A stretch of 32,000 nt of DNA from Wallemia ichthyophaga EXF-994 (GCF_000400465.1 NW_008806284.1:300001-332000), one strand, 5' to 3'; positions 2,458 to 30,643 are shown, counted from the first letter of the stretch. The notes: generated by a model not told the origin, from the letters alone. Numbers and translations: made by a program.

Positions 2458-5134
2458 TTATTGCCCTCCTCCTCCATTACCCATAGCCCTTACCTGCTGC
2501 TGCAGCTGTGGTGGCAGATTGGCGTTGTTAGCCCCCATAAGTGCTGCTTGCTGGAGTTGTGGGGAGTTGAATGGCTGTGTTGATTGTGCTGTTTGTGGTA
2601 CTTGATGCACTTGACCTGCTTGACCTGCTTGACCTGCTTGCCCTGCTTGCCCACCTTCTCCTACTCCCCCTCCTCTGGCTACAGCCGCAGCAGCAATTGC
2701 GACTGGGTGATTCGGCGGCAACATCCTCGGATTTCCCCCTTTCATTAAAAATGCCTGCGCCTGTCTATACGCCGCTGCTTGCTGTCTACGCACCAACTCC
2801 GCCTGTACCTGTCTATCCCGCTCCAACTTGAGCGTAGACATCACCACTGGATCTAGCTGTAAACGAGTAACATCCGTTGCATGTGTCTCATGCGCGAACA
2901 AACTAACACGCTTCGCTTGACCTTCTCGCTTGCTCATTTCCTTCTCACGCTTCTTGACCGATTTGCCTATTAGCGTTACTAGATGGCTACGTCGTTGGGC
3001 GCGTCGCGATTGGTCGCTAGGCAACTGCTTTTTCTTGGTGTCTTTTGTCTTTTTTGTCGTTTCTTTGACGTCTTTATCTTTGTCTTTCTCTCTCTCCTTC
3101 TCTCTCTCTCGCTCTTTCTCTTTTTCCCTTTCCCTCTCCTTATCCCTCTCTTTCTCCCTCCCCTCGCCGCTTTTCCACCTCTCGAAGCAATCCACTGGCT
3201 CGCGTCGATCAGCCGGTCTATGAGAAAAAGCCTGATGAGAGCCATTAAAGATATCAGCAACGAGTAACCAATTCCCTGTGTACTGTTGAGTGAGGGTGTG
3301 TAGTAGATTGTCTTCTTCCTCGCTCCACTGTAGACCAATCGCGGGGGATCCCTCTGGTCTATTTTCCCAGCAAGTATTTGCACTCCCGCTCTTGGTCTTT
3401 TTCCCGTGAAAAAGGTCACTAGCGCCTGTACCTGCACTTGCACCTACATTTCCCCCCTCCATGACACCATCGAGGGTATGTGTGTAGTTATCAAATGTAT
3501 CCACATCCCATGCCGACCGCGCACGATGTTTTCCAGGCTCGAGGGAAGACACGAGCATAGTTTTGTACTGCATCAGTCGACTAACATGTGCGACTCGGCC
3601 TGCTTGTGCACTGCTTGTGTCTACCCGACCATTTTCATTTCCATTTCCACCTAAGGCTGTTGCTGTCGCTGCTCCCACTCCTCGCTCCACCTTGGCAGTG
3701 TGTACGGGCGCGCGCATACTCTGTGGCGCGGTTGCGCTGGCAGTGACAGTATAGGGTGGGAGGTCGGGGAATAACTCACTCAAGTCACTAACCTCCCCAC
3801 CACTCATTTCGCTCATGTCCGCCATCACCCTCATTTCTCCCTCCAACAACGGTTTGCGGGCTTCTATTATATCTTTGTGTGGTGTGGTGGTGTGAGTGTT
3901 GGTGGTGGTGCTGGTGTGTGTCGATTGCGATTGTCCCGAGTACATTGAATGCCCAGATTGCGCCGAGCTCCCTGTATCTCCTCCCTCTTCCTCCTCCCTG
4001 ATATCTTGCTCGAGCGTAGGCGGTCTAGTGAGCTCGTCTATATCCATAGGCAAGTCGGTGTGAGTGTGTGAGTTTTTGAGTGCGGTAGCATCCTGCTCTT
4101 GCTCTTGCACCTGTTCCTCCTCCTGCTGGCGTAATATTCTCCCAGCCATATTGTCATCGACCATTCCCCTACCTGTTTCATTCTCCTCGTCTTTCTCACC
4201 TGTCACACCCCCCACATGCTCATTGATGGCGTCATTCACCTCCATTTCTGAGTCGATGGGAAGCATTTTTGTTTGCTGCTCTTGTTCCTCTCGCTCATGC
4301 TCATCTTGCTCGCGTCTTTTAAGCAGACTCTTCTGGGGAATTGAAGCATTAACACAGAGAGCCTTCTTGCCATCATGCCCAGCGCTATGCCATTCAGCGA
4401 CTTTGCTAGCGAGCAAGAAGGCGACTGAGAGTTTCCACCTGCGTTCCGCTTTGAAATCTGCCTGCAACCAACCCACCTGATCGAGGAGGTGATCCCAATG
4501 GGCGAGTGGAACAGCTACACCTCTATGTTTCTTTGGCTGTTTGAACGACCAGCCACCGCCAGCAACGCCAACACCACCATCCTCCTCCTCGTCCTGTTTT
4601 GCTGTATCCGCATCCGCATCGCGCGCTCGCAACGCCTGCAGATTGCCAATCCGCCGCACCACCTTGGCATACTTGACATCGTTGAATGCCACCCGCCAGT
4701 CAGTGAGGAAGAGCGCTTTGCTGGTGGTGGTGCCTCTGCCGATGACGGCGGCGGGGATGGGCTGGTATTCGTGGAGGGCATCTATGCGGTGGAAAGCGTT
4801 GCTCAGCGTGTTCTTCTTCTTGTGCTTGGGTTGGGTGACAGGAAAGGGGATCAGGCTGTGCGAGTAGCTCGGACTAGGCTGGCTGTCTGCTTGGTCTGTA
4901 GGAGAGTGGAGGTGGACAGGGGAAGGATCGAGGTGGCTAGTAAATTATAAGCCTGGCTCTTTGAATTGCTCGCGACGATTATATAACCCACCTCCTATCT
5001 AATTTCCAAGCCTCGAGGAAATCCATCGGGGGGGTATCACACTCGACCAGCCCAAAAGGCTTAAAATAAGGCGTGGAATATAGATTATATAGGTAATTTA
5101 TAAGCTCGAGCCTTTTATTGAGTATTTCTGTCAT
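2458..5134 (-). CDS. EAF1: NuA4 scaffold subunit Eaf1/Vid21 (HSA + SANT domains). Exons 5134-4992 and 4936-2458
   Basis: HSA-like HWDHLLDQVGWLQADFKAERRWKLSVAFLLASKVAEWH and SANT-like WSEEEDNLLHTLTQQYTGNWLLVADIFN...DCFERW, then a Q-rich tail. The frame stays open upstream of the ORF-track start (YQPIPAAVIGRGTTTSKALFLTDWRVAFN). A 55-nt phase-2 intron 4991-4937 (GTGGGT...TACTAG) joins it to MTEILNKRLELINYLY. Confidence 0.87.
3085..3165. repeat. TC/CT-rich low-complexity tract encoding the EREKERDKEREREKEKE run in Eaf1
   Basis: Pyrimidine-rich dinucleotide-like tract on the + strand; a charged run in the minus-strand translation. Limits are approximate. Confidence 0.8.
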
Positions 5135-5162
5135 ATAAATATAATAGTGATGGCTGTACCCG

Positions 5163-5881
5163 CTATACAAGCAATTCCTTGGATTTCGTCTGGTTATTGA
5201 GCTTGGTGGATGAATCGGTAAACATTTTCTGAAATTGCTTGTTAGACTCGTTGGACTAGTGATTTGTTAGGATAGCCTTGTAAATTGCTAGTCACCCACA
5301 TCAAACTCCCGCCATCCATAACCCAGGTACGCCTCATCCTCGTCCTTACGCAGAATATCCTGTACACTCGACAGCGCCGGCTTGTCCCCACTGGCCTGTG
5401 CCTGTATACCAATCAGCTTGGACGTAACACTCCCCGTAGTTGCCTTCTTATCCTCCTCCTCCTCCATATCCTCGACATCCTCCGTCTTCTTGGTCTTTAG
5501 CTGGTTGAGATTGACGCGCAACTGATAAATATCCTCCAGCTTATTCAAATGCAACTCCCCTTCCTGGATTATCCCCACAAAGTAATTAGTATTCACCCCC
5601 ATCAGCGTCGACGAGTACTCGAGCTTATCAATATCATTAGCCTTGTTATACACAATACCCCTCTTATCCAGCTCCGTATACAACTTGATCTTCTTATTCT
5701 CCTTCTTGATCTCTGCCTTGATTGGCCCACTCAAGTTACTCGTACTCGTCGGAAACTGCAACAAACTCAAACCTTTCATCTTCTTGTTCATCTTTATCGG
5801 TATACGCTTCACTAGTGGTGCTGTATGCGGTGGCAGCAAGTACTCTGGCAGGACTTGCACGCTCTCCTTATCGTCTTCCAT
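5163..5881 (-). CDS. RPC5: RNA polymerase III subunit Rpc5/C37 (Sin-like). Exons 5881-5300 and 5255-5163
   Basis: LVKRIPIKMN...LSLLQFP...YFVGIIQEGELHLNKLEDIYQLRVNLNQL fits the Sin_N/C37 pattern. A 44-nt intron 5299-5256 (GTGGGT...CTAAC...CACTAG) adds the last exon SNESNKQFQKMFTDSSTKLNNQTKSKELLV*. Confidence 0.75.
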
Positions 5882-6011
5882 GATGGTAGTGGTGGTTTGA
5901 GGCGAATATCCGCGTAATATACATCACAGGTACTCTACACCACTCTATCCAACCACACAAACATCCTCAATCACTCTCGCTCTCCCTTCCCCGCTGAAAA
6001 TATTCACCCTT

Positions 6012-6413
6012 TCAGACACTCCTCTCTGGTCTCTGTAGCGACTTCAACTTGGGTCTGCCGATATTACCATTGGAAGTAATCCCACTGCGATTCCTACTTG
6101 TCTCGCCAACATTCCCTATCCTACGTCTGTTCATCTCCTCACTCATCTCCTTCCCCAGCTGCATTCCCCTGCTATAAACTATTTCTGCCGCTGCTTTAAA
6201 CACATCATTACCCTGCTGTCCCCGCTGAAAATCTTCTTCGGCAATGTTCTCTTCCGAAGGAAAGACGCCACCGATACCCCAAACCGGCCTCTCTTTCAAC
6301 TTCCTCACGCGATTATTCTTTGCATCGATAGCGTCTCGTTTCTGATCATCTGGCTGTCTACTGTGAGCGCTAGTTGACAGTGACACACCCACACTCACAC
6401 TCATCCTTGCCAT
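6012..6413 (-). CDS. Small soluble protein homologous only to the cytosolic N-terminal region of the aquaglyceroporin at 20815-23012 (no MIP domain)
   Basis: AKNNRVRKLKERPVWGIGGVFPSEE matches AKHNEHMRRVKSKRPLWGIGGVFPAED; GNDVFKAAAEIVYSRGMQLG matches GQEVLNAAAEAVFSRGRELG; NGNIGRPKL matches TGNLGSTKF. A possible in-frame 45-nt intron at 6398-6354 (GTGAGT...GCTCAC...GACAG) would give 118 aa instead of 133 aa. Confidence 0.7.
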   Translation of the reverse strand: MARMSVSVGVSLSTSAHSRQPDDQKRDAIDAKNNRVRKLKERPVWGIGGVFPSEENIAEEDFQRGQQGNDVFKAAAEIVYSRGMQLGKEMSEEMNRRRIGNVGETSRNRSGITSNGNIGRPKLKSLQRPERSV

Positions 6414-6429
6414 TTATTTCTTTTTCCTA

Positions 6430-6493
6430 ATCGAAGCTTCACAAGATGTTGGAAGGTGCCGCCTTGATTTATTTTTGATTCCCGCTGACATCA
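6430..6493. promoter_or_regulatory. Conserved upstream footprints ATCGAAGCTT (6430-6439) and TGACATCA (6486-6493)
   Basis: The same two words recur at almost the same spacing upstream of the paralogous pseudogene (7376-7385 and 7431-7438), while the sequence between them has diverged. Confidence 0.45.
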
Positions 6494-6926
6494 TCCTTTG
6501 TAATCTCACTCAAAGTCGGCTCTAAATCGAGGTTTCACGGCAAATATGGTGCATCTCTGGTTTGACTTGAAATATAAATTAATTCAAATGCTAGCTGGTA
6601 AAGTATCAGAGCCTTGATTGTGTGATATAGTGACTCTTTTAACGCCTGGGCACCACTTTTGTCACCGTGCTTCTGCACTTGATCCCCTTGAATCGCAATT
6701 AAGCAATGAATCAATAACTATTCATCCAAACTCACCTCTACACAAATTTACATTCTTGCGCATTCTCACATTCTCCCACTTTCGCACTCATTTCATTGAA
6801 AATATTCACCCACTCACGAACCTCAAATGCTCTTCGCAGGTCTCAGCAGTGGCCTCAGCTGAGGACGCGTGAGTTTAGCAATGGTTCTGCTGCTGCTGCT
6901 TTTTAAATTCATCTTGATACTATCTT

Positions 6927-7297
6927 TCATGCTACTCTTGATGCTCTTGCTGCTTCTCTGTATATTGCGCTTGCACCTCTCGATTCCCTTTCGAGCTTAA
7001 TTTCATCGCTTAGCACCCTCCCTAATTGCATTCCCCTACTGTTTGTAATCTCTGCAGCAACTTTGAAAGCATTCTCTGTATCATTGCTATTGCTATTGCT
7101 CTTGAAACCACTACCACTTCGGGTCTGTTGAACCCGATGAAAATCTTATTCATCCCTCTCTTCTGAAGGAAAGACACCGCTGATACTCCACAAGTATCTA
7201 TGTTGATTCTTCGAGTGATCAGTGAGCTCATCTGGCGAGTAATTTTATTGGTTTGATTGTGTGCGAGTGTGCTTTGAGAGATTGTGCTGTGAGTCAT
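6927..7297 (-). pseudogene. Degenerate tandem paralog of the 6012-6413 gene
   Basis: A frame not shown in the ORF track reads NYSPDELTDHSKNQHRYLWSISGVFPSEERDE*DFHRVQQ...NAFKVAAEITNSRGMQLGRVLSDEI...*. An in-frame TAA replaces the Glu of EDFQR, and the 5' part is in another frame. The 5' limit is approximate. Confidence 0.75.
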
Positions 7298-7772
7298 TCT
7301 GCATCCCTCACAAAGCACACCTACTATTCCTATCGCTTTGCACTTCAAACTCTACCTCCTACTTTCCACTGTCTTATCGAAGCTTATAAAGGGATGGGAT
7401 CGTACTGGCGTCTTTATTATCGACTCGCACTGACATCACGTCACCCATTGCACTCTGCTTCCATAATAGGCCTTTGAACATTCAAATTCACATTCGAATT
7501 CGCCTCTTTCTCAACCCTTGCTCTTATCTCGCTTGCTGAGACATGTCAGTGGTCAAAATTAAAACAAGTCTGAATTCATTATAGTCTCGATCTATGCACT
7601 CATCGTGGCGCTTTAGGCACAAGTAAACCATTTCGTCATCTACTTCTTCACCGCATAAATTATCAGACCTGTCTCACTTTGTCGAAGCAAGTCTAATGTC
7701 GTTAAAACGTGTAGCATATATCATGACAATAAATTAGTCATTACAAATGGGGTATTGTCTACAGAAGCTTAT

Positions 7773-8735
7773 CTAGAGCAAGTCACCCTTGGAAGAGTCC
7801 CAGGAACCACTACCAGCTGATGTATCCTTGGTTGCGCCAGTGGCCCAGTCACCTGAAGTGCCCTTGCCACCCATCTTGCCCTTGCCTCCCTTTGGACCAC
7901 CCATCATACCTTGTCTCTTGAGCAAATCACCGCCTGAAGATTCCCATGAGCCACTACCAGCTGAGGTGTCCTTGGTTGCACCAGTGGCCCAGTCACCTGA
8001 AGTGCCCTTGCCGCCTTCGCGTGCCGTCAAGCCTCTCTTACCACCCTGGTAAAATTGACCTCTCTTGAGTAAATCACCCTCGGAGGAGTCCCAGGAGCCA
8101 CTTCCAGCTGAGGTGTCCTTGGTTGCGCCAGTGGCCCAGTCACCTGAAGTGCCCTTGCCACCCATCTTGCCCTTGCCTCCCATACCGTGTGCTTGTCTCT
8201 TCAATAAGTCACCGTCTGAGGAGTCCCAAGAGCCGCTGGTTGCTGCAGTGTCCTTAGTGGCACCATTGGCCCACTCACCAGACCCAGCGCCTTTGCCAGC
8301 ACGCTTGAGCAAGTCACCCTCGCTGTGGTCGTTTTCACCTGCTGAGGCGGCGCTGTCTTTAGTAGTACCGTAGTTCCATTCGCCAGCTAAAGGATATTAG
8401 CTAAGACATTTCGGAAAGTAAAAGTCAACTCACAACCACCACCTGAACGTCTTACTCCGTCAGCTGCACGGCTTTGGTACTGGATTACTGTTTAGTTACT
8501 TTAAAATGCATCGAATGATACTCACGCCACGCTTCAAAAGATCACCCTTTGAGCTATCGGTTTCGCCAGAAGTGGCAGCGGTGTCCTTGGTAGCGCCGTT
8601 GGCCCATTCACCAGAGCCTGCGCCTGAGCGAGCGATCTAATGTGCTTGTGAGCGCCGTCATAGGTGCAAATAGTCACGTACCGGAGCGGCTGTTGCAGCA
8701 GCAACCATTGCGATTAAAGCGATTGAGAACTTCAT
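7773..8735 (-). CDS. Secreted Kex2-processed repeat protein (KEP), 274 aa, six GDLL-ending repeats. Exons 8735-8682, 8636-8526, 8479-8434, 8386-7773
   Basis: Signal peptide MKFSIALIAMVAAATAAP, introns of 45, 46 and 47 nt with canonical sites, and exon lengths summing to 825 nt. Repeats SG(E/D)W..G.TKD...GDLL are separated by six KR sites. Confidence 0.85.
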
Positions 8736-11217: not shown

Positions 11218-11830
11218 GAGCTCTTACAGCAACAGAAGCTTTCCAACAACAAAATGTCCTTATTACAATACTATATATGCTCATATATACCCTTAATTTG
11301 CGCCACATAATGCTTCAGCCTCGTTAGCTTGGCAGAATGACGAGATGTGACTATAGCAGAAGAATCATCAGCCCAGCTGGCTTTATAAGAAGCGCTATAT
11401 CTCTCTTGCTTTTCTACATCCCAAAAGACAGAAATGTACTTCAACACCGCCAAAGCTCTCGCCGTTCTTGCATTCACTGGCACCATCGCATCAGCAGCAG
11501 TCACACAACCAGACAACATCGCCCGTCGCAGAGATGAGAAAGACGCCAACGCCATCAAAGACCACAAGGATGACTACAACTATGGTAATGGTGTCGATTC
11601 CAAGAATGACAACAACCACGGCAAATACGACAAGCAAGACAAGCTATCTCACGAAGAGGCACTCAAGAAGCATCGCGAGGAAGTTGAGAAGCAAATCAAG
11701 CTGAACAATGAGGCTGCTGAGAAGAACAAAGCGGATGTCAAGGTTGGTTGAAGTGATGTTTGGTGAAAATCAGCTTACACTGTTTTACCAGAAGACAGAC
11801 GAATACTGGAAGTCTGACAAGAAAGATGAC
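11218..11830 (+). repeat. Near-identical segment (promoter, exon 1, intron) duplicated in inverted orientation at about 30250-30859
   Basis: Identity starts abruptly at GAGCTCT (11218 versus 30859) and continues through the TATA-rich promoter, exon 1 and the intron into EYWKSDKK. Confidence 0.95.
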
Positions 11831-12448
11831 AGCGATGAAATCAACTATAAGAAGCACGATGGTAAGCACGACAGTAACGACGAGAAACAAGATAGCAAGT
11901 ATGTCAACAAGAAGTCCAGCCATATCAAGCACGAGGATGATCGTTATGGTGGCAACGACAAGAAGCACAGCGGCGATAAACACAGCGACAACAAAAAGGA
12001 AGAGGATAACAAATACCACATGAAACATGACGACCAAATTTCAAGCGGTAAGAAGCATAGCAACAACGACATGAAGCATGACGACAAGATGGACAAAAAA
12101 GTGAAGCACGAAAATAATGATAAGAAGCATGATAATGAGGATTTCAGCGGTAGCAAGAAGCACGATGACAATAAATACAACGAAAAGACGTCTGGGAACA
12201 ACATTAAGATTCATGACAACGACATGAAACACGACGATGGCAAGTACGATGATAGAAAGTTAACTGAGAACAATTACGGCAGTAACGACAAGACGCACGA
12301 TAGTGACGTTGAACACGGCAACAACGGCAAGAATCAAGGTGACAAGAAGCATTACAATAAGCACAACGAAAACGACAAAAAGGCCGAGAACAAAAACGGC
12401 GAGAAGAACAACAACAAATACGACGACGAAAATAATGAAAAGAATTAA
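11434..12448 (+). CDS. Secreted His/Asp/Lys/Asn-rich hydrophilic repeat protein, copy A (321 aa). Exons 11434-11742 and 11792-12448
   Basis: Signal peptide MYFNTAKALAVLAFTGTIASA, dibasic site IARRR, a 49-nt phase-0 intron 11743-11791 (GTTGGT...TACCAG), then many KH(D/S/E/G)-type motifs. Confidence 0.85.
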
Positions 12449-17635: not shown

Positions 17636-18580
17636 ATGCCATTCGGTAAATAGACCTACTGTACACTTGCCACACCTCCTAACAAACCCTTAGTCAAGGA
17701 AGCCAAGAGCAACGCTTACTTCTCTCGCTACCAAGTCAAGTACCGTAGACGTCGTGAGGGAAAGACCGACTTCTACGCTCGTAAGCGCCTTGTGACCCAA
17801 GCCAAGAACAAGTACAACGCACCAAAGTACAGACTTGTCGTCAGATTCACCAACACCAACATCATCTGTCAAATTGTCTCTTCAAAACTTCAAGGTGACG
17901 TTACTTTGACCCAAGCTAGTGCACGCGAGCTTCCAAACTATGGTATGAAGAACGGTCTCACATCATGGACTGCAGCCTACGCTGTTGGTCTCCTCGTCGC
18001 CAGAAGAGCGCTCACCAAGCTCGGTTTGGCCGACAAGTACGAGGGTGATGTCGAAGCCACCGGTGAATACAGTCTCACTGAGCCACTCGGTGATGACGAG
18101 CCAAGACCATTCAAGGTCTTCCTTGACGTCGGTCTTAAGCGTACCTCCACCGGTTCCAAGGTCTTTGGTGCCCTCAAGGGTGCCTCAGACGGTGGTCTCT
18201 ACGTCCCACACTCCGAAAACCGTTTCCCAGGTTACGACATTGAGTCCAAGGAGCTCGATGCTGAGATTCTCCAAAAGTACATCATTGGTGGTCACATTGC
18301 TGAGTACATGGAGTCTCTTGAGGAGGAAGATGAAGAGAGATTCAAGAAGCAATTCTCTCGTTACCTTGCCGACGGTGTTGGCTCCGATGACATAGAAGAC
18401 ATTGTCTCCAACACCCACGAGGCCATCAGAGCCAACCCAGAGTACAAAAAGACTGAAAAGAGCAAGGACTGGGCTTCCGAGAGCAAGAAACACAAGGCTA
18501 CTAAGCTCACTAAGCAACAACGTGATGCTGGTATCCAACAACGTATCCAGTACTTCCAACAAGCTGAGAACGCTGAGTAA
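17636..18580 (+). CDS. RPL5: 60S ribosomal protein L5 (uL18). Exons 17636-17645 and 17694-18580
   Basis: MPFV|KEAKSNAYFSRYQVKYRRRREGKTDFYARKRLVTQAKNKYNAPKYRLVVRFTN...LDVGLKRTSTGSKVFGALKGASDGGLYVPHSENRFPG. There is a 48-nt intron at 17646-17693 and strong codon bias. Confidence 0.99.
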
Positions 18581-19145
18581 ACTCTCTTGTAGCATGCTCT
18601 TATATATTAACTGTCTGTTGTTTTACATGAGTTTGAAGGTGTGGTTGATGTGTTTGAATTATATGAAATTTTTAATCTCTCATTAAAGCGGAAGCCTAGG
18701 TAGACCTAATGAATAATTTAAGCAACCAGTTGATTCATTTTCAAACCTTGTACCGCTTGTGTTGCTTTTAGAAATGGAACACGTGGAGAATATTTTGGAC
18801 ACGCGGAGAGATCAACGAGAATGCAATACCGGATAAGAAAGTGAGTTTTTGAGGCCAAGCATACGTATGGTATTGCTAAAAACTTCACGTTCACGTGTCG
18901 GAGTAATGGACAAGTAGTTAAGAGCTCAGCTTCAGCACATTTCCTCTTTTCAGTCTTGACATGGATAGTTGAGGACAATTGGTGGACACTGAATACTAGA
19001 TGAAGATACTAGACACTCGTGGACATTTAGTTGAAAGTACTTGCCTTAGCTGTCTTGGGAGCTGATCTTACATTATAGGTTGTGGCTACCTCGCCACTGG
19101 CATGTCTTCTCTATCACATATGCGCTTTATAATTTTCAGTTGCCT

Positions 19146-19538
19146 TCACTGTATGCTCACTCCTCTAAACCACTCCACAAAACCTGGCTGATCCGTGCGT
19201 GTATGGGCTTGGCATAATTTAGAAAATAATAAATCCCAAAAAGTAGAGGAAATGAATCTGACCAAGGCATAGTCTACTAACTTTAATTCAAACTTCGTCA
19301 TGACTTGGGTTGATGGTATTGAAGATGAAGACGCCAAAGCTGCTGAAACCGTTGGCATTTCTGAAGGCCTTGTATCATTAACTAGTGCTCTGATTTCATA
19401 TGGAAGATTGTTTGAGTCATTGTGACGCAAAATACCAGTGTTTGTGTGTACATAAGTCTCGGATGCGAGCAACTCTATGATTTTGGCCGTTTTCGAATGT
19501 AGCATCTTCATAAAAAGCAAGGTCTTGGTCGCCTTCAA
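19146..19538 (-). CDS. Possible exon of a spliced hypothetical gene
   Basis: A 130-codon frame with a plausible GTGAGC donor near its 3' end. No family recognised and the exon structure is unresolved. Confidence 0.25.
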   Translation of the reverse strand: MKATKTLLFMKMLHSKTAKIIELLASETYVHTNTGILRHNDSNNLPYEIRALVNDTRPSEMPTVSAALASSSSIPSTQVMTKFELKLVDYALVRFISSTFWDLLFSKLCQAHTRTDQPGFVEWFRGVSIQ

Positions 19539-20814
19539 GAGTTACATCTTCCTCGACAGGTGGATATGGCTCAGAAACTTGGAAGGCGACCTCTGAAACT
19601 GCAGTAAAAGTGCTAGAGAGCTACTTGTCCATTACAAGACCAAACCCGCCATAGATTACAATTGCTCGTATAAAAGCAACGCCGTCTGATTGAAACTTGC
19701 AAAGGTAGAATGATCAAAGGATAGCGAAGGGAAATGTTCAAGACACCGTTTTGGACCTGATCGAGAGGCGCGCAGAATTATTCAAATTCGTTAAACGCGG
19801 CGATCTTTGAAGCGGAAGGAAAATTAGGAAGTGGTGAGAGTAAACTTGTCAAAGGTTTAAACATAGTTATTTATTAACCTACCTTTATCTCCAACCACTG
19901 CTCCAGAGCTCAAAATTTGCATTCGAAGATCCCAGATAATGACAAACGCGTCTTGATTCCTATCATTTAGCCGAAATAAACACGTCAAAGTGAAAAGCCT
20001 CGACAAGTCCTATCATGCGCCCAAGTCTTCTTTTTAGAATACATGCGCAGCTTGACCTATCAATCATTTCTTAAGCCATGCATCCATGAACTTGTGCGAG
20101 GCAAATTACGGGAAGCAAGCTCATTAGCGGCGATTATCTGAGCACGCCTCCGCTGAAAAGATTCTCCTCTTTGAAGATTTTCAGACGAATATCGCCCTGC
20201 CCAAAGATCTCTTGGATACTTAAGTCCTGATTTGCAATAGCCCAAGATGACGAGATGTTTTAAAAGATTCAATTGTCACACATGATATTCATCGTCGTTC
20301 TAGCTATAGTCAGAGGACAATGTTCAACGGGTGCTGATGCTGTGGGAATTGAGTGCAAGCTTGCGACGGTGCTATCATTAAAGAACGTTAGTCTGAAATC
20401 TGCATTAAAGTTCAGACGATATGACGATGTGAAGACAGCAACGCCTTAATTCAATCATGGTGGAGGGCAATACATCAATTCACCAGATGATCAAGACATA
20501 TGCATAGGAATAGGGGTGAATTGCTAGATCTGTAGAGTTTCACTTACACGAAACACGATTGTATAGGTAATCTATTGTCGAAATACTTGAACAGCTCCTA
20601 GGCATAAGGTACAAGGCACGTCTCCTTCCAATTTATTCCGCTGGGCGAAGTTTAAGCTGAGTAGCTATGAAATCAACAGATAGGCATATAATAATTTAAA
20701 TATATTCATAATCCTGTCAACTTTGTTATACATACAATCAAGCTATCCTTATTATAGTAGAAATCAATAAATAGAAAGTCCTAAAGTGACGAGTGAAAGT
20801 GCAATGTCTCGCCG

Positions 20815-23012
20815 CTAAACAGCCTTGTTTCCCTTCTTATTTTCCAGCTCGTGTATTTCATTCTGTAAGTCTCTCTCCTTCCGATCTCTTTCCATCCGTT
20901 CAAGCCCAGCTTTTGCCATGTTGTGCGTTCGAAACATAGGGTTAATCAACCGTCGCCATTGTTTGCCGGTGAAGTTGACTGGACTACCCAGTCCACTATA
21001 GATGCAAAAGTCGTACGCTAATGCACCTAAGATCGAGCCGCCGAAGGATCCCAAGATGGGCCCAGTTAGCCACCTGCTATTGTGAGATGATGATGTGTGA
21101 TGAGAGAAAATTACCCACCACCATCTATCGTGCGTCCATAGCTCCTTCCCGTAGCCAACGCAACTGAGCATGATGCGTGGGCCGAGGTCGCGAGCTGGGT
21201 TCATGGCATATCTGGTGAGTGTGATTGCTCAGGGAAAATTCACGTGCTAAAGACACCACACTCACCCGCTTAAAGCACCTAGAGACGTACCTATGGCCAT
21301 AATGATTAGTGCAAGAACTAGAGCACCCAAAGACGCTCCAGGTGGCGTATTGTCACGATCACCAAGGGCTAAAACACTCGATGTCAATACTGCAGTCGCG
21401 ATGACTTCCTGATACACTGCAAGACCGATGGTAGTATTTTCTGTTGTGGGGATTGTAGGGAATAACGCAGCTGTGCCACTCGAAGACACCGTCTTTGCGG
21501 GATCTATGTTGTAAAGAGACTGACAGTACATTCCATAGACCGTAAAGCTTCCGATAAATGCACCTAGAACCTGTGCAATCCAGTATTTCCAAAGCATTTT
21601 CCAAGGAAATCCTCGAAATAAAGCAAGAAAAAGAGTGATGGCTGGGTTAAGGTGGCCACCAGAAACACCACCAGCAATGTAAACGCCAGTCATGACTCCA
21701 ACGCCGAATCCCCAATTCAAATTCGTATATGCAGCTGTCTGATTTGTATAAATAAGTGTCTGACAGCTGGCGCCAGTGCCAATAATCATAAATACACACG
21801 TCCCGAGCATCTCTGCGAGCGGTTCCCGCATGTATTCTCTAATGTTGAACCAAAAATTGTAAATGGGTTCATCAGGATTCTCATACTTTTCTTGTTCAAT
21901 GGGATCATCAAGCCACTTATTTTCCATTTCTCCAACCTGCCCAGTGCCACCGCCTTGTGGGTAATTTTGCGACTTGTCAGTGTTATATGACAGAGAGCGG
22001 TCCTGATCAGCGGCCGGTGTGTCCTTTTGACCATCTATAATCCCACCGACCTGACCTTCCTCCTTTCCCTGAGTATCGCGATTAGTTAAATCCTTATCGT
22101 CTGACTTCTTGTCTGCCATCTCCTTGTCTGCCTGCTCCTTGTAGTAGCTATGCTGCTGTGTCTGGGTAGGAAACCTTTTGCTAGGCTGAGGACGAGCAAA
22201 CGACGGTCTTCTGTTGTCATCGATAACACCCCCGACCTGAAATGGTGTTCTGCTTGATTTTGTACTTTTATTGTCTTCCATCATTCCGCTTACTTGGCCA
22301 AAAGGAGTATTATGCTGACCAGGTGTTATTCCAGGTGTTATTCCAGGTGTTGTTCCAGGTGTTGTACCCGGTAAATTGAAATAGTCACCGGCCTGGTTGG
22401 TGTGATGAGATGGTGGCTGGGAACTCGAGTAGCTAGAGCCGAATTTGGTTGATCCTAAGTTTCCCGTGGGGAGAGATGGTGTGTTACCCGTGATACTAGA
22501 CGCCTGCTGATAGCCTAGTTCCCTGCCTCTGGAGAAAACGGCTTCTGCAGCTGCGTTTAAGACTTCTTGGCCACTTCCGCTAATATCGTTGTTTCTGCCT
22601 TGAGTCTTTCCACTTTCATGATTGCTAGGCTTCTCTGAATCCTCAGCAGGGAAGACACCCCCAATGCCCCAAAGGGGACGTTTGCTTTTTACTCTGCGCA
22701 TGTGCTCATTGTGCTTAGCTGTAATATTATTTTGGTGCTGTTGCTGTTGTTGCTGCTTCTGCTCTTTCTGGTTCTTTATAAAGCTTTCTTCGTCGTTTGC
22801 CTGTTGTTGCTGAGAATCGGTGAGTTTATCCTGTTGCTCGGGTTGCTTGAGCTGATCTCCCCCTGTGGGTGCTTGTGATTGTGCTTGAGGGGATCCTACG
22901 TGTGGTGTGTTTGGTCTGCTCTCTTCTTCTGGCTCCTCTTTCAACGTATCGTGCGTTGATATCTATGAACGCCTTAGAACACTATCAGATACATAGACAT
23001 GGCACTCACCAT
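20815..23012 (-). CDS. Aquaglyceroporin (MIP family, GlpF/Fps1-like), 698 aa with a long cytosolic N-terminus. Exons 23012-23010 (ATG only), 22962-21266, 21211-20815
   Basis: Two NPA boxes (SGGHLNPAIT and SG|YAMNPARDLGPR). The ar/R filter is W/G/Y/R by alignment to GlpF motifs. Introns are 47 nt (23009-22963) and 54 nt (21265-21212). Confidence 0.95.
22319..22372 (-). repeat. 12-bp tandem repeat (about 4.5 copies) encoding PG-TTPG-TTPG-ITPG-ITPG in the aquaglyceroporin N-terminus
   Basis: + strand: CCAGGTGTTATT x2, CCAGGTGTTGTT, CCAGGTGTTGTA, CCCGGT. Confidence 0.92.
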
Positions 23013-23480
23013 AAAGTTGAAATTTTGTCCTTATCGTAAATTCCGAACGGCTTACCAAAAGTGAGGATTTTTGACAGTGTGTCATTCTGATTTCACCGAT
23101 TTTTCATATTTTTGAGTAATGACGACATGACTTTAAAGTTATATAACAGCCGTTGCCGTAAACCTTATATTATTAGCCGTTCCTTCTTAGCCCTGTAAAC
23201 CAAGCGCTGAATGTCCGTCTCGATGCCGGTGATGCCGCCGTTATCACGAGATATTTTACAAATTAGCTGCATTCGTAGATATACATGTACATTCCTGATC
23301 GCTAGCCGTGGCGTGCCTCAATAAAGAAGGAAAGGGTCCTTTGGTTTACAACGGAGTGCCTGATTTGCGAGAAAAGTGTATTTAGCGTGTTTAATTCGTC
23401 TGGATAAGCTTCCACAGGCTATACACCAAATCATGCCTCCGCTAAAATCTCTCTGACTCCCACTACCTTCACCCTACGTT

Positions 23481-24572
23481 ATGACGTTGCGAGGATTTCT
23501 GCAGAACGCCAGGCTGCCCGTCATACAAGCGCCCATGGCCGGTGCCAGCACGCCCAAGATGGCGATAAGCGCGAGTAACTGCGGTGTACTAGGAAGTATC
23601 GGCTGCGGAATGATGCAGCCTAACGCACTCAAGAGCGCAATTAGAGAGACAAAAGCGGGGACTGAGAGACCATTTAATGTTAATTTATTCGTAACGGACA
23701 ATCAAGAAGGATACAATGTGGACAGCGTCCGCGATAGGTTGGCGTGGCTATACGACTACTATACGGAGATGGGACTGGATTCACCACGTCCATCCACATT
23801 CGCACCCAAATTCGAGGAGCAGTTTGAAGCCCTCCTGGAAGCCCAGCCTCCTATTGCGTCGTTTGTCTTCGGTGGGATAGATATTGCACGCGTAAATGCC
23901 TTGCATGAGCGAAATATATCTGCAAGTGATGTAGCTTTACAATTCGCACTACTCACGACCATGTAATCTCAGGTAATAGGCGCCGCCACCACACCAACTG
24001 AGGCTGAATACTGGCAGAGAGTGGGTGCAGATGGGATAGTTTTGCAGGGAATAGAGGCTGGTGGACACAGGTGCAGTTTCCTAGATCCAGAAAATCCAGG
24101 CGAGCCGCTCAGTGAGCTGCTCAAAGCGACGAGACATCTACACACACCGCTCATCGCAGCTGGCGGGATAATGAATGGTAGGGACGTGAGAGGTGCTTTG
24201 AGGCAAGGAGCAGACTGTGCACAGCTCGGCACGGCATTTTTGACAACCGAGGAGTCACCTGTACCTGCATCATACCGTGAATCTCTCATCGCTGCCCATA
24301 ATGACGATACCACTCTCACAAAGGCCTTTTCAGGGAGATGGGCACGCGGTATTAGGAACAGATTTACAGATATGGCTGGAGTGCAATTCACAGCTCCTTA
24401 TCCAGTTCAGAATGCCCTCACTCAGCCTCTGCGTAGCAATGCAGCAACACATCACCGCTCAGATGAGTTATCACTGTGGGCAGGTATGGGTGTTGGGGCT
24501 GTTCGTGACTCTCCCTCTACTCCACACCTCATCGATAAGCTGCAGAGGGAATATGATGGCTATAATATATGA
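23481..24572 (+). CDS. Nitronate monooxygenase / 2-nitropropane dioxygenase family flavoprotein (346 aa). Exons 23481-23921 and 23973-24572
   Basis: PVIQAPMAGASTPKMAISASNCGVLGSIG; PFNVNLFV; GADGIVLQGIEAGGHR; PLIAAGGIMNG; AQLGTAFL; TKAFSGRWARGIRN; LSLWAGMG. The intron is probably GC-AG (23922-23972). Confidence 0.93.
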
Positions 24573-24679
24573 ACTTGAAGAATATATGTAATATTGTATT
24601 CAATTAACTCGCTTACAAAAATAAACTATAACAAGACTTGCGTTGCTGTGTTTCTGAAAATTTTCTTAGACTACCCAGG

Positions 24680-24973
24680 CTAGTAATCATAATCATTTGG
24701 GCCTGGCTCATAGTCTGTTACTTGAACGCGGTAAAACTTGTTCTTGCTGCCAGGAGTTTCATTTTCGTTGGGGTCTGCGTTGAGGAGTGTATGTGATATA
24801 CCGCCTCTCTTGAGCGGATAACGTGGCTTTTGCGGGTGTTCAGCGAGTTCAGTGTCTTTTGAATGCTCAGATTTCCTAGGGTGTTCGCAGTCACCCCCCT
24901 TTATTGGCACAGGCGATGCTGCTGTGACAACCACTAGCATAATTAAGAGCAGTGTACACAATTGCCAGTTCAT
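24680..24973 (-). CDS. Small secreted protein (97 aa) with one KR site
   Basis: Signal peptide MNWQLCTLLLIMLVVVTAASP, an internal EHPRK/EHPQK duplication, PLKR|GG, and an acidic Tyr-rich C-terminus. Confidence 0.65.
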   Translation of the reverse strand: MNWQLCTLLLIMLVVVTAASPVPIKGGDCEHPRKSEHSKDTELAEHPQKPRYPLKRGGISHTLLNADPNENETPGSKNKFYRVQVTDYEPGPNDYDY

Positions 24974-25564
24974 TTCTCAGAAGCAGTTCACTGTGCTCTT
25001 TGAACTGTGGCTGATGTTGCTCTAACTTCCACTTCTTCGCCACCTTCATACCATTCCATCCATCGGTGATTGAAATTTAGACTAAAGGCCGGGAACAATC
25101 CATGTGGAAAGATCAGCAGACAGATTTTGATGTGACGGGATAAATATAGGTAGGATACATGATTTACACAAGAATTATGAGAAACGTGGTGTGTCTTAAC
25201 ATTCAACCAAGTTGAAGTGATGACTGGAGAGTCAGTAAAGTTCTGGTAAGGCTGTAATACCCACTTGAGCCGGCTTGGCTGCTACTATTGGCATGAAAGC
25301 CGCTAACGATAAAAGGAAAGATTTGGATTCTTGAGGGACTCGTAGGTTTTGATGGTGAAGTAAAGTGGAGAGAAATATCACAAATACAGCAAACAACGTC
25401 ATCATATCATACCTGCTGCGCAAACATTTGCTTCCTTTTCAAAAGACAATATGCGATCAAGATGACATCAGAAAAAATCTTGGCTAATCAAACGCATTAT
25501 TGTAGAGTGATGTAAACATAGTATACAAGCAGGCGTTAAAGGCATGTCTAAGAAAATGAGACAT

Positions 25565-25833
25565 TTAAATAGCCTTGTCTAAGGCGCCGTTAGCAACGTC
25601 ATTCAAAAGACGCTTCTCTTCCTTCAGGAGGCTTAGTAAAAATGAAAACACACCACTTTAGTCCACACTTACAGTTCCACGCTTGAGGATCTTGTCAGCA
25701 GCGCCGTTGGCGACGTGGTCGAGGAGCTGAGCTGTTTTAGTATGCGGGTATGTGCTAGTAAAATTCCACTCACTGGTGCAGCAAAGGCGGTAGAGAGAAG
25801 GGCAATGGTGGCAGCGATGGCTGAGAGCTTCAT
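25565..25833 (-). CDS. 56-aa secreted two-repeat Kex2 peptide precursor (absent from the ORF track). Exons 25833-25774, 25726-25673, 25621-25565
   Basis: Spliced translation MKLSAIAATIALLSTAFAAP|LLDHVANGAADKILKRGT|EEKRLLNDVANGALDKAI*. Introns are 47 nt (GTGAGT...ACTAA...CTCAG) and 51 nt (GTAAGT...ACTAAG...GAAG), both phase 0. Confidence 0.82.
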
Positions 25834-26605
25834 TTGAGCGATGGAAGTTGTCTGAGGAAAGCGTGTTGCGCGAATATTTATTCATTCAACCCGCGTTTAC
25901 CTTCCTTTTCCGGATATGCTAAAATTTTACATTCAAGAGATGTCGCATGTGAGAATTGGAAATTGATTGATTGAATTAATACAGAATCAAAGTTTTTGAT
26001 GATTTGGTTGATGCTGTATCGTCAAATGGCTCAGCTAGTGTTTGGAAGGTCCTTTCTGGTTCTGAGAATTCCCTCAGCAAAGTTCTTAAATGAATCTTGT
26101 AGGATAGGATGTGCTGTGGATGACGTTGAAGTGGCTATAACGAGACCAGTGACGATTGCTAAAAATTTCATTGCCTTGTGAGGAGTAGATGCGCAAAGCT
26201 GAGGAAGAAGATTATAATATAAAAAGATGCCTGCCTGAATTACTTATTTCGGTGTTTATTTGATTTAATATGTCGCAGTTTTGACTCATATTTTTGAGCG
26301 AACGAGTGTGAACAGGCTAGGATTTATAACATTGTTCTGTTGATGATAAAGCATTTTGCCGGTAGAATAACAAATTATCGGTTTCTTTGTTGCCAGCGGT
26401 CACGTGAAATCGCTCGTAACGAACACCAACCATGACACACTAAGACATTTACAATCAATTTAGCCACTATAGAATGCGCTTGAAAGCGCTTAAAAACGTT
26501 CATTGACTCATTTATTCCATTGACTCAACTACGGATGACGAAACTCGGTCACCGCAGACCGAGCGACACTGAGAAATCACTTCATCGACAGCTTAATCGA
26601 AAACA

Positions 26606-27705
26606 ATGAGAGGATTATTTATTAAAGGCGAGCGTAGCGTTGAGATTAAAGACGTCGATCGACCAGCACTTGATGGACACAACGATATTCTCGTCGAGGT
26701 GGGTGATAAGCTCTCACAGGCACACCACGCTCACCAAACCACCAGGTTCACGCGGTTGCACAGAACCCACCCGACAGTTTCTCACTCCTCGGTAGTCCCG
26801 GTAAACCTGGCAATCGCCTGGGAAGTGACTATGCGGGTGTTGTCGTTGAATCAAAATCAGACTGTGTTAAAATCGGTGACAGAGTCTGTGGTATGGTATC
26901 TGGCAACCACTCACCCCACCAAGGCTCATTTGCTGAATATTTAGCTACTTCCGCAGATCTCACTATCAAGATACCATCAGCGATGTCATTTCAATGCGCC
27001 TCTACACTCGGCATGTCCCTCTTCACTGCCATTCAAGCGCTCTTTCTCAAATCACCACTTGCTCTCGACCCCAACCACACCAAGGCAGTCCTCATCTGGG
27101 GCGCTAGCACTGCTATTGGCATGTACGCGGTGCAACTCGCTCACATCAGCGGTATAAAGATAGTGGCTACCACGAGTGAGAGGAATAAAGATCTAATTTC
27201 CTCCCTTGGTGCCCACATCGTTTTTGATTACAAAGATGCAGACGTGGTTGAGAAGGTGAGGGAATCTACAAACGACAATGTCACCTTCGCAATTGATTGC
27301 GTCGGCTCGCCAGAAACTCTCAAAAGTACAGTCGCATGTGCATCTGATGCGCAGTCAGCTACCGTGCACACTGTCCTGCCTCCCGCGAAAGATTTCAAAG
27401 CTAAGGCAAGTTCGAACGTCGTCTTCTCGCTCGTACACTCCGGCTTCGCTGAGGACCTCTCTTGGGCTAACTACCTTTTTCCCCGCCCCGTTACGATGGA
27501 GGAGATGATGCAGGAGCGCAAGGAGGCTGTCGCGTTCTTCGGTTACGACAGAGGCACAATCCCCGGTCTTTTAAGAGATGAAATTCTCAAAACTACACCT
27601 ATCGTCGCGACCAGCAAAGGGCTGGAAAATATCTTACCTTGGCTGCTCAAGATGGAAAAGGGTGAAATCAGAGCTGGTAAAGTTGTACATCTTTTGAAGG
27701 AATAA
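26606..27705 (+). CDS. Medium-chain dehydrogenase/reductase, enoyl-reductase-like (TOXD/LovC-like), 350 aa. Exons 26606-26698 and 26746-27705
   Basis: ILVE|VHAVAQNPPD; LGSDYAGVVV; KIGDRVCGMV; GSFAEY; VLIWGASTAIGMYAVQLAHISG; FDYKDADVVEKVR; GKVV. A 47-nt intron lies at 26699-26745. Confidence 0.9.
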
Positions 27706-29832: not shown

Positions 29833-30643
29833 TCAGTATTTCTTATCGTCCTTGTACTTATCTTTGTTGCTGCTGTGCTGTTTGTCGTTGCTGTCGGACT
29901 TTTTGTCGCTTGACTTTGTATCGTCGGGCTTGCCATCGTCGTGTTTCATGTTGTTGTGCTTATCGTCGTAATTTTTATGCTGCTTCTTTTCACTTCCGTC
30001 CTTCTCACCACCATGCTTCTTGTTATTGTTGTCATGCTTCATTTCGTTATATTTCTTTTGGTCATGATACATGTCTTGCTCGTTGTCCTCGTAATTTTTG
30101 TTGTCGCTGTGCTTCTTGCCATTGTCAGTATACTGCTTATCTTGGTGCTTCATACCGCTGGACTTCATGTTGTCATACTTGTCATCATGTTTCTTGTCGT
30201 TGCTGCCGTGCTTGTCATCATAATTTTTGTCATTGCTTTCATACTTGTCATGCTTCTTGTCAGACTTCCAGTATTCGTCAGTCTTCTGGTAAAACATTGT
30301 AAGCTAATTTTCACCAAACATCACTTCAACCAACCCTGACATCCGCTTTGTTCTTCTCAGCAGCCTCATTGTTCAGCTTGATTTGCTTCTCAACTTCCTC
30401 GCGATGCTTCTTGAGTGCCTCTTCGTGGGATAGCTTGTCTTGCTTGTCGTATTTGCCGTGGTTGTTGTCATTCTTGGCATCGACACCATTACCATAGTTG
30501 TAGTCATCCTTGTGGTCTTTGATGGCGTTGGCGTCTTTCTCATCTCCGCGACGGGCGATGTTGTCTGGTTGTGTGACTGCTGCTGATGCGATGGTGCCAG
30601 TGAATGCAAGAACGGCGAGAGCTTTGGCGGTGTTGAAGTACAT
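29833..30643 (-). CDS. Secreted His/Asp/Lys/Asn-rich hydrophilic repeat protein, copy B (253 aa). Exons 30643-30335 and 30285-29833
   Basis: Exon 1 differs from copy A at 3 of 103 residues and has the same 49-nt intron. The repeat exon is shorter and rearranged (KKHDKY, MKHQD, MKHDN, MKHDDGK). Confidence 0.85.

Follow-up and report, generated by a model that had tools for sequence, protein, structure and literature searches.

Within a 32,000-nucleotide stretch of Wallemia ichthyophaga EXF-994 DNA (the window), which corresponds to ~290001-322000 of scaffold KE007234.1, a short reading frame beside RPC5 carries motifs of the cytosolic N-terminal tail of an aquaglyceroporin encoded elsewhere in the same stretch, and raises the question of whether a channel tail without a channel is a gene in its own right, how it came about, and what it does now. 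This mini gene (J056_000788, EOR00590.1, GME3022_g) is a real, lineage-restricted partial-duplicate gene of Wallemia, small, separate, and transcribed. A piece of ~300 nt within the large 5' exon of the gene for the aquaglyceroporin was duplicated to form it; an ATG, a tiny 5' intron, and a promoter of its own came afterward, and the reading frame has persisted from a time before the split between W. ichthyophaga and at least one other Wallemia species. Judged by sequence comparison, the gene was under purifying selection for much of the time since that split; it was duplicated later in tandem in W. ichthyophaga, and the second copy is dead. As to its present role, we put at a little below an even chance the reading that it codes for a currently functional tail mimic or tail-motif protein.

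A channel tail segment without the channel

The mini gene has two exons (Table 1). Unspliced, the reference ORF codes for 133 aa, and a look-up of that ORF gave no recorded match; with the intron removed, as in all NCBI annotations, the product is 118 aa and identical to W. ichthyophaga EOR00590.1. This mini-protein has a pI of 10.1, a GRAVY of -1.08, and 34% charged residues, contains no Pfam domain even at E≤1, and its profile has no match among PDB sequences at E≤1. Rfam, tRNA, and tandem-repeat scans of the region identify no element overlapping the mini gene. The MIP family (PF00230) is a six-helix channel domain with two NPA boxes; the mini-protein has no channel domain and is not a member of this family. 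The stop codon is only 130 bp from the RPC5 ATG (5881), and the only MIP-coding DNA in the window is that of the aquaglyceroporin gene, in agreement with the original prediction that there is no room for a MIP domain ahead of RPC5. The conserved stretch just 5' of the ATG is probably the core promoter or 5' UTR of the mini gene.

The mini-protein aligns with the aquaglyceroporin ORF at 21262..22944 (-) with 37% identity over 93 aa (BLASTP, E 1e-13) and with its blocks colinear, and a whole-window tblastn search with the mini-protein returns the same tail match. The channel, EOR00599, is nine genes from the mini gene and is one of three aquaglyceroporin-related proteins described in the genome paper. 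Block 1 (RPVWGIGGVFPSE) is colinear with RPLWGIGGVFPAE in the tail, and RPVWGIGGVFP at residues 27-37 fits the aquaglyceroporin tail motif [RK]P[LI][WF][GA][IVM]GGVFP, which is defined as following a basic stretch; block 2 (VFKAAAEIVYSRGMQLG) is colinear with VLNAAAEAVFSRGRELG, and residues 59-72 (AAAEIVYSRGMQLG) fit the second-block pattern AAA[ED]xVxSRGxxLG. Both are kept in the tails of other Wallemia species, and block 2 is seen in Wallemia only. The third block is weak: BLAST instead aligns the tail sequence GNLGST with another stretch of the mini-protein, GNVGET, and block 3 is absent from the sister-species ortholog and from other tails, with its first G polymorphic (G101D). Three tail-matching blocks in the same order had been proposed, of which the first two are solid and the third is not conserved elsewhere.

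The mini gene and the channel gene share a strand, the channel gene is the upstream one (MIP exons 14 kb away), and several genes separate the two. The mini gene can thus be no 5' exon of the channel; splicing to a MIP-coding exon, which had been raised as a way for the idea to fail, is implausible. The frame is thus what the original prediction took it to be, a copy, lacking the channel, of one part of the tail of the aquaglyceroporin 16 kb away, and the truncated duplication offered there as an alternative is right as to origin. The tail has a further repeated feature at ~21900-22400 (-), where there are three to five degenerate GQVGG[VI][IL]D[DG] repeats (e.g., FQVGGVIDDN and GQVGGIIDGQ); GQVGG[VI][IL]D repeats are also present in the tails of W. 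hederae, W. mellicola, and other Wallemia species, and block 1 resembles the first and most divergent GQVGG-type unit of the tail.

Tblastn also detects an unannotated 94-codon copy on the same strand, ~800 bp upstream of the mini gene, with 46 to 52% identity to the mini-protein. In this copy the motif is degraded to YLWSISGVFPSEE, an in-frame TAA (7146-7148) is common to all haplotypes, and one haplotype (L009-L011) has a second stop (RGM*LG); the copy is undetectable in the sister-species spacer. As a dead tandem duplicate, this copy provides an internal control for decay at this locus.

Table 1. The mini gene, its parts, and related features of the window (positions counted from the first nucleotide of the window)
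Feature	Position	Strand	Remarks
RPC5 (GME3021_g)	5163..5881	-	224 aa; downstream neighbor of the mini gene
Mini gene (J056_000788 / EOR00590.1 / GME3022_g)	6012..6413	-	Annotated
Stop codon of mini gene	6012-6014	-
Exon 2 of mini gene	6012-6353	-
Intron of mini gene	6354-6398	-	45 nt, in-frame, GTGAGT..ACAG
Exon 1 of mini gene	6399-6413	-	Encodes MARMS
Block 3, GNIGRPK	6048..6068	-	Residues 101-107; weak
Block 2, VFKAAAEIVYSRGMQLG	6153-6203	-	Residues 56-72; inside a predicted helix, pLDDT 80-87
Block 1, RPVWGIGGVFPSE	6252-6290	-	Residues 27-39; predicted disordered
Example peptide of the mini-protein			ERPVWGIGGVFPSEENIAEEDFQR
Conserved stretch just 5' of the mini gene ATG	6424..6503	-	~71% identity with sister species
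Decayed tandem copy of mini gene	6930..7211	-	Unannotated; 94 codons; tblastn
Aquaglyceroporin gene (EOR00599-type)	20815..23085	-	692 aa in P0003; MIP domain encoded at 20818-21852
Parental module in aquaglyceroporin N-tail	22447..22725	-	~residues 92-184 of the 692-aa protein

Relatives in Wallemia and in other basidiomycete channels

Stand-alone relatives are scarce. An exhaustive HMM search of 1.84 billion representatives returns four proteins: the mini-protein itself, two aquaglyceroporin N-tail fragments, and a 121-aa stand-alone ORF (P0020) on Logan contig L008 of run SRR25399871. The search returned no stand-alone homolog from the annotated proteins of W. mellicola and W. hederae or the rest of the 1.84 billion representatives. 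No extra stand-alone copy is present near the aquaglyceroporin genes of W. hederae, W. mellicola, and one W. sebi-complex species, in loci that do not include RPC5. Word-indexed searches with the mini-protein or a four-sequence profile find two W. ichthyophaga clusters only and miss the parental channel too, and a scan of JGI metagenomes with the two block patterns gives 221 pattern matches, none of which is confirmed.

The order on contig L008 is the end of a GK-rich repeat gene, a spacer of ~1.5 kb, the mini-gene homolog, and RPC5 (85% aa identity). The aquaglyceroporin tail in the same run is ~57% identical to the W. ichthyophaga tail and differs from that of W. hederae, and the source is therefore another Wallemia species; the presence of the mini gene in a sister taxon, which had been posed as a check, is thus borne out by a syntenic stand-alone copy beside RPC5. 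The L008 ORF has no in-frame ATG of its own, and an ATG at 1591 is followed by GTGAGT and by in-frame AG acceptors 37 or 49 nt on, from which we infer a splice that would recreate the short first exon and tiny intron of W. ichthyophaga. Block 1 reads NLVCGVGSVFP in this species, with the W and one G lost, and a TAG removes the last 20 to 40 codons; in-frame homology continues beyond it (ITRPKLKPIQ versus W. ichthyophaga IGRPKLKSLQ). EDF[QH]R and RGMQLG[KR]xxS[ED]E are common to all stand-alone copies, the dead one and those of the two species, whereas the tails have RG[RK]ELGY[QE]. Since these residues are absent from all tails, the duplication is older than the species split; recent gene conversion from the channel tail is excluded for the same reason, the shared residues being derived.

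Some other differences in gene order and annotation accompany these comparisons. The block containing the aquaglyceroporin, NMO, ADH, and adh_short genes (17792-27705) is inverted in W. ichthyophaga relative to the second Wallemia species (contig L006). In W. hederae, the channel directly follows uL18 on the same strand, and one gene model (P0004) wrongly fuses uL18 with the aquaglyceroporin.

Block 1 extends well beyond Wallemia. The motif is present in the tails of W. ichthyophaga (22650-22690, (-)), W. hederae, and another Wallemia species, and also in the N-tails of aquaglyceroporins of Pucciniomycotina yeasts (P0008-P0012); examples are Rhodotorula kratochvilovae (ARKPLWAIGGVFPKH), Rhodosporidiobolus species (DKPLFAMGGVFPKH and DRPLFAVGGVFPKH), Sporobolomyces pararoseus (KPPLWAMGGVFPKK), and Pseudohyphozyma bogoriensis (GRPRIWGIGGVFPQP). 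The W. mellicola tail has a weaker block 1 (KPVFGVGGPMP) and no block 2, and a Lachancea Fps1-like protein has EKPIWGL only. Because it is conserved in tails from Wallemiomycetes to Pucciniomycotina, block 1 is probably a short linear motif to which a conserved partner binds, and [RK]P[LI][WF][GA]xGGVFP is a concrete candidate regulatory site across distant basidiomycetes. By eye, it fits the loose MAPK docking pattern (R/K)1-2-x2-hydrophobic-x-hydrophobic, which is permissive, so that this is only a lead. The mini-protein belongs, as its sequence places it, to this basidiomycete aquaglyceroporin tail-module family. A literature search pairing the block 1 motif with aquaglyceroporin found no paper, papers on W. 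ichthyophaga osmoregulation name only the three channels, and tail-only aquaglyceroporin paralogs were not found in the literature searched.

Constraint between species and variation within W. ichthyophaga

In the 2-kb spacer, the only segments that can be aligned between the two species are RPC5, the core of the mini-ORF (65% nucleotide identity), and the ~80 nt 5' of the ATG (71%). In a nucleotide-level alignment made without protein guidance, differences at codon positions 1, 2, and 3 number 15, 16, and 37, respectively, with 74 sites each (chi-square, P = 0.001). Mini-gene indels between the species preserve the frame, and the ATG and 5' splice site are conserved; when neutral change is simulated to the same p-distance, 95 codons stay open in only ~5% of trials. 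Nei-Gojobori estimates between the species are pN 0.33 and pS 0.72 for the mini gene, 0.19 and 0.65 for the channel tail, and 0.11 and 0.82 for RPC5.

The mini gene is annotated in all W. ichthyophaga genomes, and no stops or frameshifts are present in the sequences seen. Nine 118-aa sequences were compared (eight annotated, and one Logan ORF read without the intron); a tenth, a 128-aa Logan ORF, differs in its called start only. At the DNA level, haplotypes L001, L004, and L009 differ at 18 codons of the mini gene, with 14 nonsynonymous and 4 synonymous changes, which is close to the neutral expectation of 3.9:1 (P = 0.78) and is a nonsynonymous excess over that expected at an omega of 0.2 (P = 0.003). 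An open reading frame within the species is expected by chance with a probability of ~0.4 to 0.56. Nineteen residues vary across the nine sequences, and just one of them (V29I) falls in blocks 1 and 2, which together make up 30 of the 118 residues (P = 0.028); both blocks may therefore still be protected while the remainder drifts. Protected motifs amid drift are typical of disordered proteins with short motifs.

Pairwise divergence is 3.5 to 4.0% in the mini gene, ~1.9% in the pooled noncoding flanks, 0.8 to 3.2% at synonymous sites of neighboring genes, and 0.17% in the RPC5 exon. The excess over the flanks (Poisson, P = 0.007 to 0.03) needs no positive selection, because genealogies switch along the region, and the deepest synonymous divergence in neighbors, ~3%, matches it. 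Relationships among haplotypes L001, L004, and L009 over 3125-7772 change along 4 kb, with the reference being the outlier at the mini gene and L009 the outlier in an HSA/Myb-domain gene further downstream, which suggests recombination between W. ichthyophaga lineages. Noncoding divergence has a local peak (~3%) around the mini gene. The HSA/Myb-domain gene itself has an 18-bp in-frame indel between lineages (2623-2640, (-)), in its Gln/Ala/Gly-rich C-terminal part (GQAGQAGQAGQ).

Selection on the mini-protein now seems weak and confined to blocks 1 and 2. Its weakness is indicated alike by the variation among W. ichthyophaga sequences, by the dead tandem copy, and by the damaged ortholog of the sister species, and the gene may be on its way to loss, as that ortholog suggests. 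It is a serious possibility, although one that we rate below probable, that the mini gene is a decaying relic, a once-functional partial duplicate that is now a transcribed, functionless ORF still lacking a stop in W. ichthyophaga. The neutral nonsynonymous-to-synonymous ratio, a diversity at or above that of the noncoding flanks, and an open frame of the kind that chance would leave are as expected of a relic, as are the tandem copy already dead, a sister-species ortholog without key block 1 residues and its C terminus, and the narrow distribution of the stand-alone gene. Other evidence fits a relic poorly: third positions change most between species, with frame-keeping indels and a conserved ATG, intron, and promoter; variants avoid blocks 1 and 2; expression exceeds that of both neighbors; and all nine of the 118-aa sequences are intact, whereas the 94-codon neighboring copy has one or two stops. 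On purifying selection of stand-alone versions, which had been posed as a check, the syntenic ortholog and third-position bias speak for it and near-neutral evolution within W. ichthyophaga against it; within the species dN/dS is near 1, an outcome that had been named as one that would refute the idea.

Predicted structure, expression, and comparison with known regulators

The AlphaFold2 model of the mini-protein, built from a 10-sequence alignment, has a mean pLDDT of 62 and a pTM of 0.25, with helices at residues 6-26 and 40-85, a pLDDT below 50 in block 1, and disorder across residues 86-118. In the full-length channel model, the tail has a helix at 59-101, then block 1 with a pLDDT below 50, then a helix at 141-158; the MIP core is confident, and there is no sign in this model of block 1 docking on it, a result that at so low a pLDDT speaks neither for nor against docking. 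The mini-protein is thus predicted to be basic, hydrophilic, and foldless, and to copy the layout of the tail, with a helix, a disordered RPxWGIGGVFP, and a helix containing AAAExVxSRGxxLG. Such a composition (pI and charge as above, with no predicted fold) would also suit a new function unrelated to the channel, such as that of a nucleic acid-binding or stress-protective basic disordered protein in which the tail blocks are historical baggage, and most of the sequence evolves fast and the gene shows no salt regulation. We consider this quite improbable, as the residues that are constant both within and between species are those of the tail-derived blocks 1 and 2.

Expression was taken from published RNA-seq (Table S4 of Zajc et al. 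2013), in which gene identifiers follow genome order. GME3022_g is assigned to the mini gene by position and length, lying between GME3023_g and GME3021_g; its 357 nt correspond to 118 aa plus a stop, and the 675 nt of GME3021_g correspond to the 224 aa of RPC5. The anchors are GME3023_g (a GK-rich protein) and GME3029_g (Mdm12), both checked by sequence, and GME3030_g, an 897-nt ribosomal gene, is taken as uL18. GME3022_g has 1,088 reads (RPKM 155.7) at 10% NaCl and 1,416 reads (RPKM 197.6) at 30% NaCl, a log2 change of 0.34. RPKM values are 79 and 149 for RPC5 (log2 0.91) and 16 and 40 for GME3023_g, so the mini gene exceeds both neighbors in a table that gives counts without transcript ends or read strand. 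The expected channel identifier, GME3031_g, is not among the expression-sorted Table S4 rows listed, which may reflect a lower RPKM for the channel. The mini gene is thus separate, annotated, and transcribed, as the original prediction required; a strong response to salt is not seen, with little change between 10% and 30% NaCl and no entry for GME3022_g in the differential-expression table for these salinities.

The least probable explanation is that the mini-ORF belongs to an RPC5 unit, with a long RPC5 leader carrying it as upstream ORF or first cistron, so that its translation or its RNA matters rather than the peptide; the 130-bp stop-to-ATG gap on the same strand, the conservation of this arrangement in the sister species, and read counts that leave transcript ends undefined are compatible with it, but the two genes differ in RPKM at 10% NaCl (156 versus 79) and in salt response (log2 0.34 versus 0.91), it is the amino acid sequence that is conserved between species, beyond the reading frame alone, an intron and a conserved upstream stretch both belong to the mini gene itself, and short spacers are normal in a 9.6-Mb genome that is 74% coding (genome paper).

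Two other features of the window were noted alongside. GME3023_g (7773-8708, (-)) contains 144-bp tandem repeats, codes for a G/K/S/W-rich protein of 265 aa that is reported to be 2.5-fold up at 30% NaCl, and has a 3' end that is conserved in the sister species. K/H/D/N-rich low-complexity ORFs at 11708-12448 (+) and 29833-30297 (-) are paralogous (47% identity, E 5e-27), and both carry FYQKTDEYWKSDKK near their start.

If the mini-protein does act as a tail mimic today, its most economical function would be to compete with the channel tail, since it keeps exactly the segment with the ancient motif and the helix. The partner of block 1 may be a kinase (Hog1, for example), some other regulator, or the channel itself through one of its surfaces, and a soluble mini-protein expressed at an RPKM of 150 to 200 could compete with the tail for that partner in the manner of a microProtein, shifting the gating of the glycerol channel. 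A decoy role of this kind is plausible. The more specific proposal, that the mini-protein titrates a WGIGGVFP-reading factor in trans and so sets the threshold at which glycerol efflux is gated in an obligate halophile, we regard as unlikely; if true, no microProtein-type regulator would have been described for an aquaglyceroporin before, and the mini-protein would offer a way to find the partner of the motif. Should the mini-protein be a competitor, the microProtein principle would reach membrane-channel regulation, and the mini-protein would be a ready bait for the tail partner; should it be merely a decaying duplicate, it is a tidy case of gene birth and death by partial duplication.

The closest functional reference is Fps1 of Saccharomyces cerevisiae, which is gated via its tails with Hog1 and Rgc1/2 (Lee et al. 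2013, PMC3861672), in agreement with the background to the original prediction; Ypk1 is also part of the known control logic of Fps1. The mini-protein is homologous to part of a long cytosolic N-tail like those of Fps1-type channels, but, unlike Fps1, has no MIP domain. Fps1 binds Hog1 through a MAPK D-motif at residues 213-220, which, like its regulatory domain, is adjacent to TM1 (Lee et al. 2013, PMC3861672), whereas the blocks of the parental tail are ~285 residues before TM1 (Fps1 being taken from its description), and WGIGGVFP is undescribed for Fps1 in the literature searched. Rgc1 and Rgc2 (Ask10) are soluble cytosolic regulators that set the open or closed state of Fps1 via its tails, as is proposed for the mini-protein, but both are large, contain a PH domain, act at the C-terminal tail by binding it, and are homologous to neither the channel nor the mini-protein.

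Two further classes bear comparison. Like microProteins such as Arabidopsis miP1a/b (PMC4807768), the mini-protein is small, derives from a larger multidomain protein, and retains a putative interaction module only, and it fits the structural definition of a microProtein, with 118 aa, a match of E 1e-13 to the tail of a 692-aa channel, and no other domain. Known microProteins mostly target transcription factor dimerization via a folded domain (PMC4807768), whereas the mini-protein is a disordered segment of a channel tail. It resembles unprocessed pseudogenes in its origin as the duplicate of an internal piece, its stop-bearing tandem copy, and its near-neutral evolution within the species. 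Unlike pseudogenes, the mini gene is intact in every haplotype seen, is transcribed, possesses a start codon and an intron of its own, and shows a coding signature in the comparison between species: Wallemia has a free-standing copy of exactly this tail segment, expressed and long kept.
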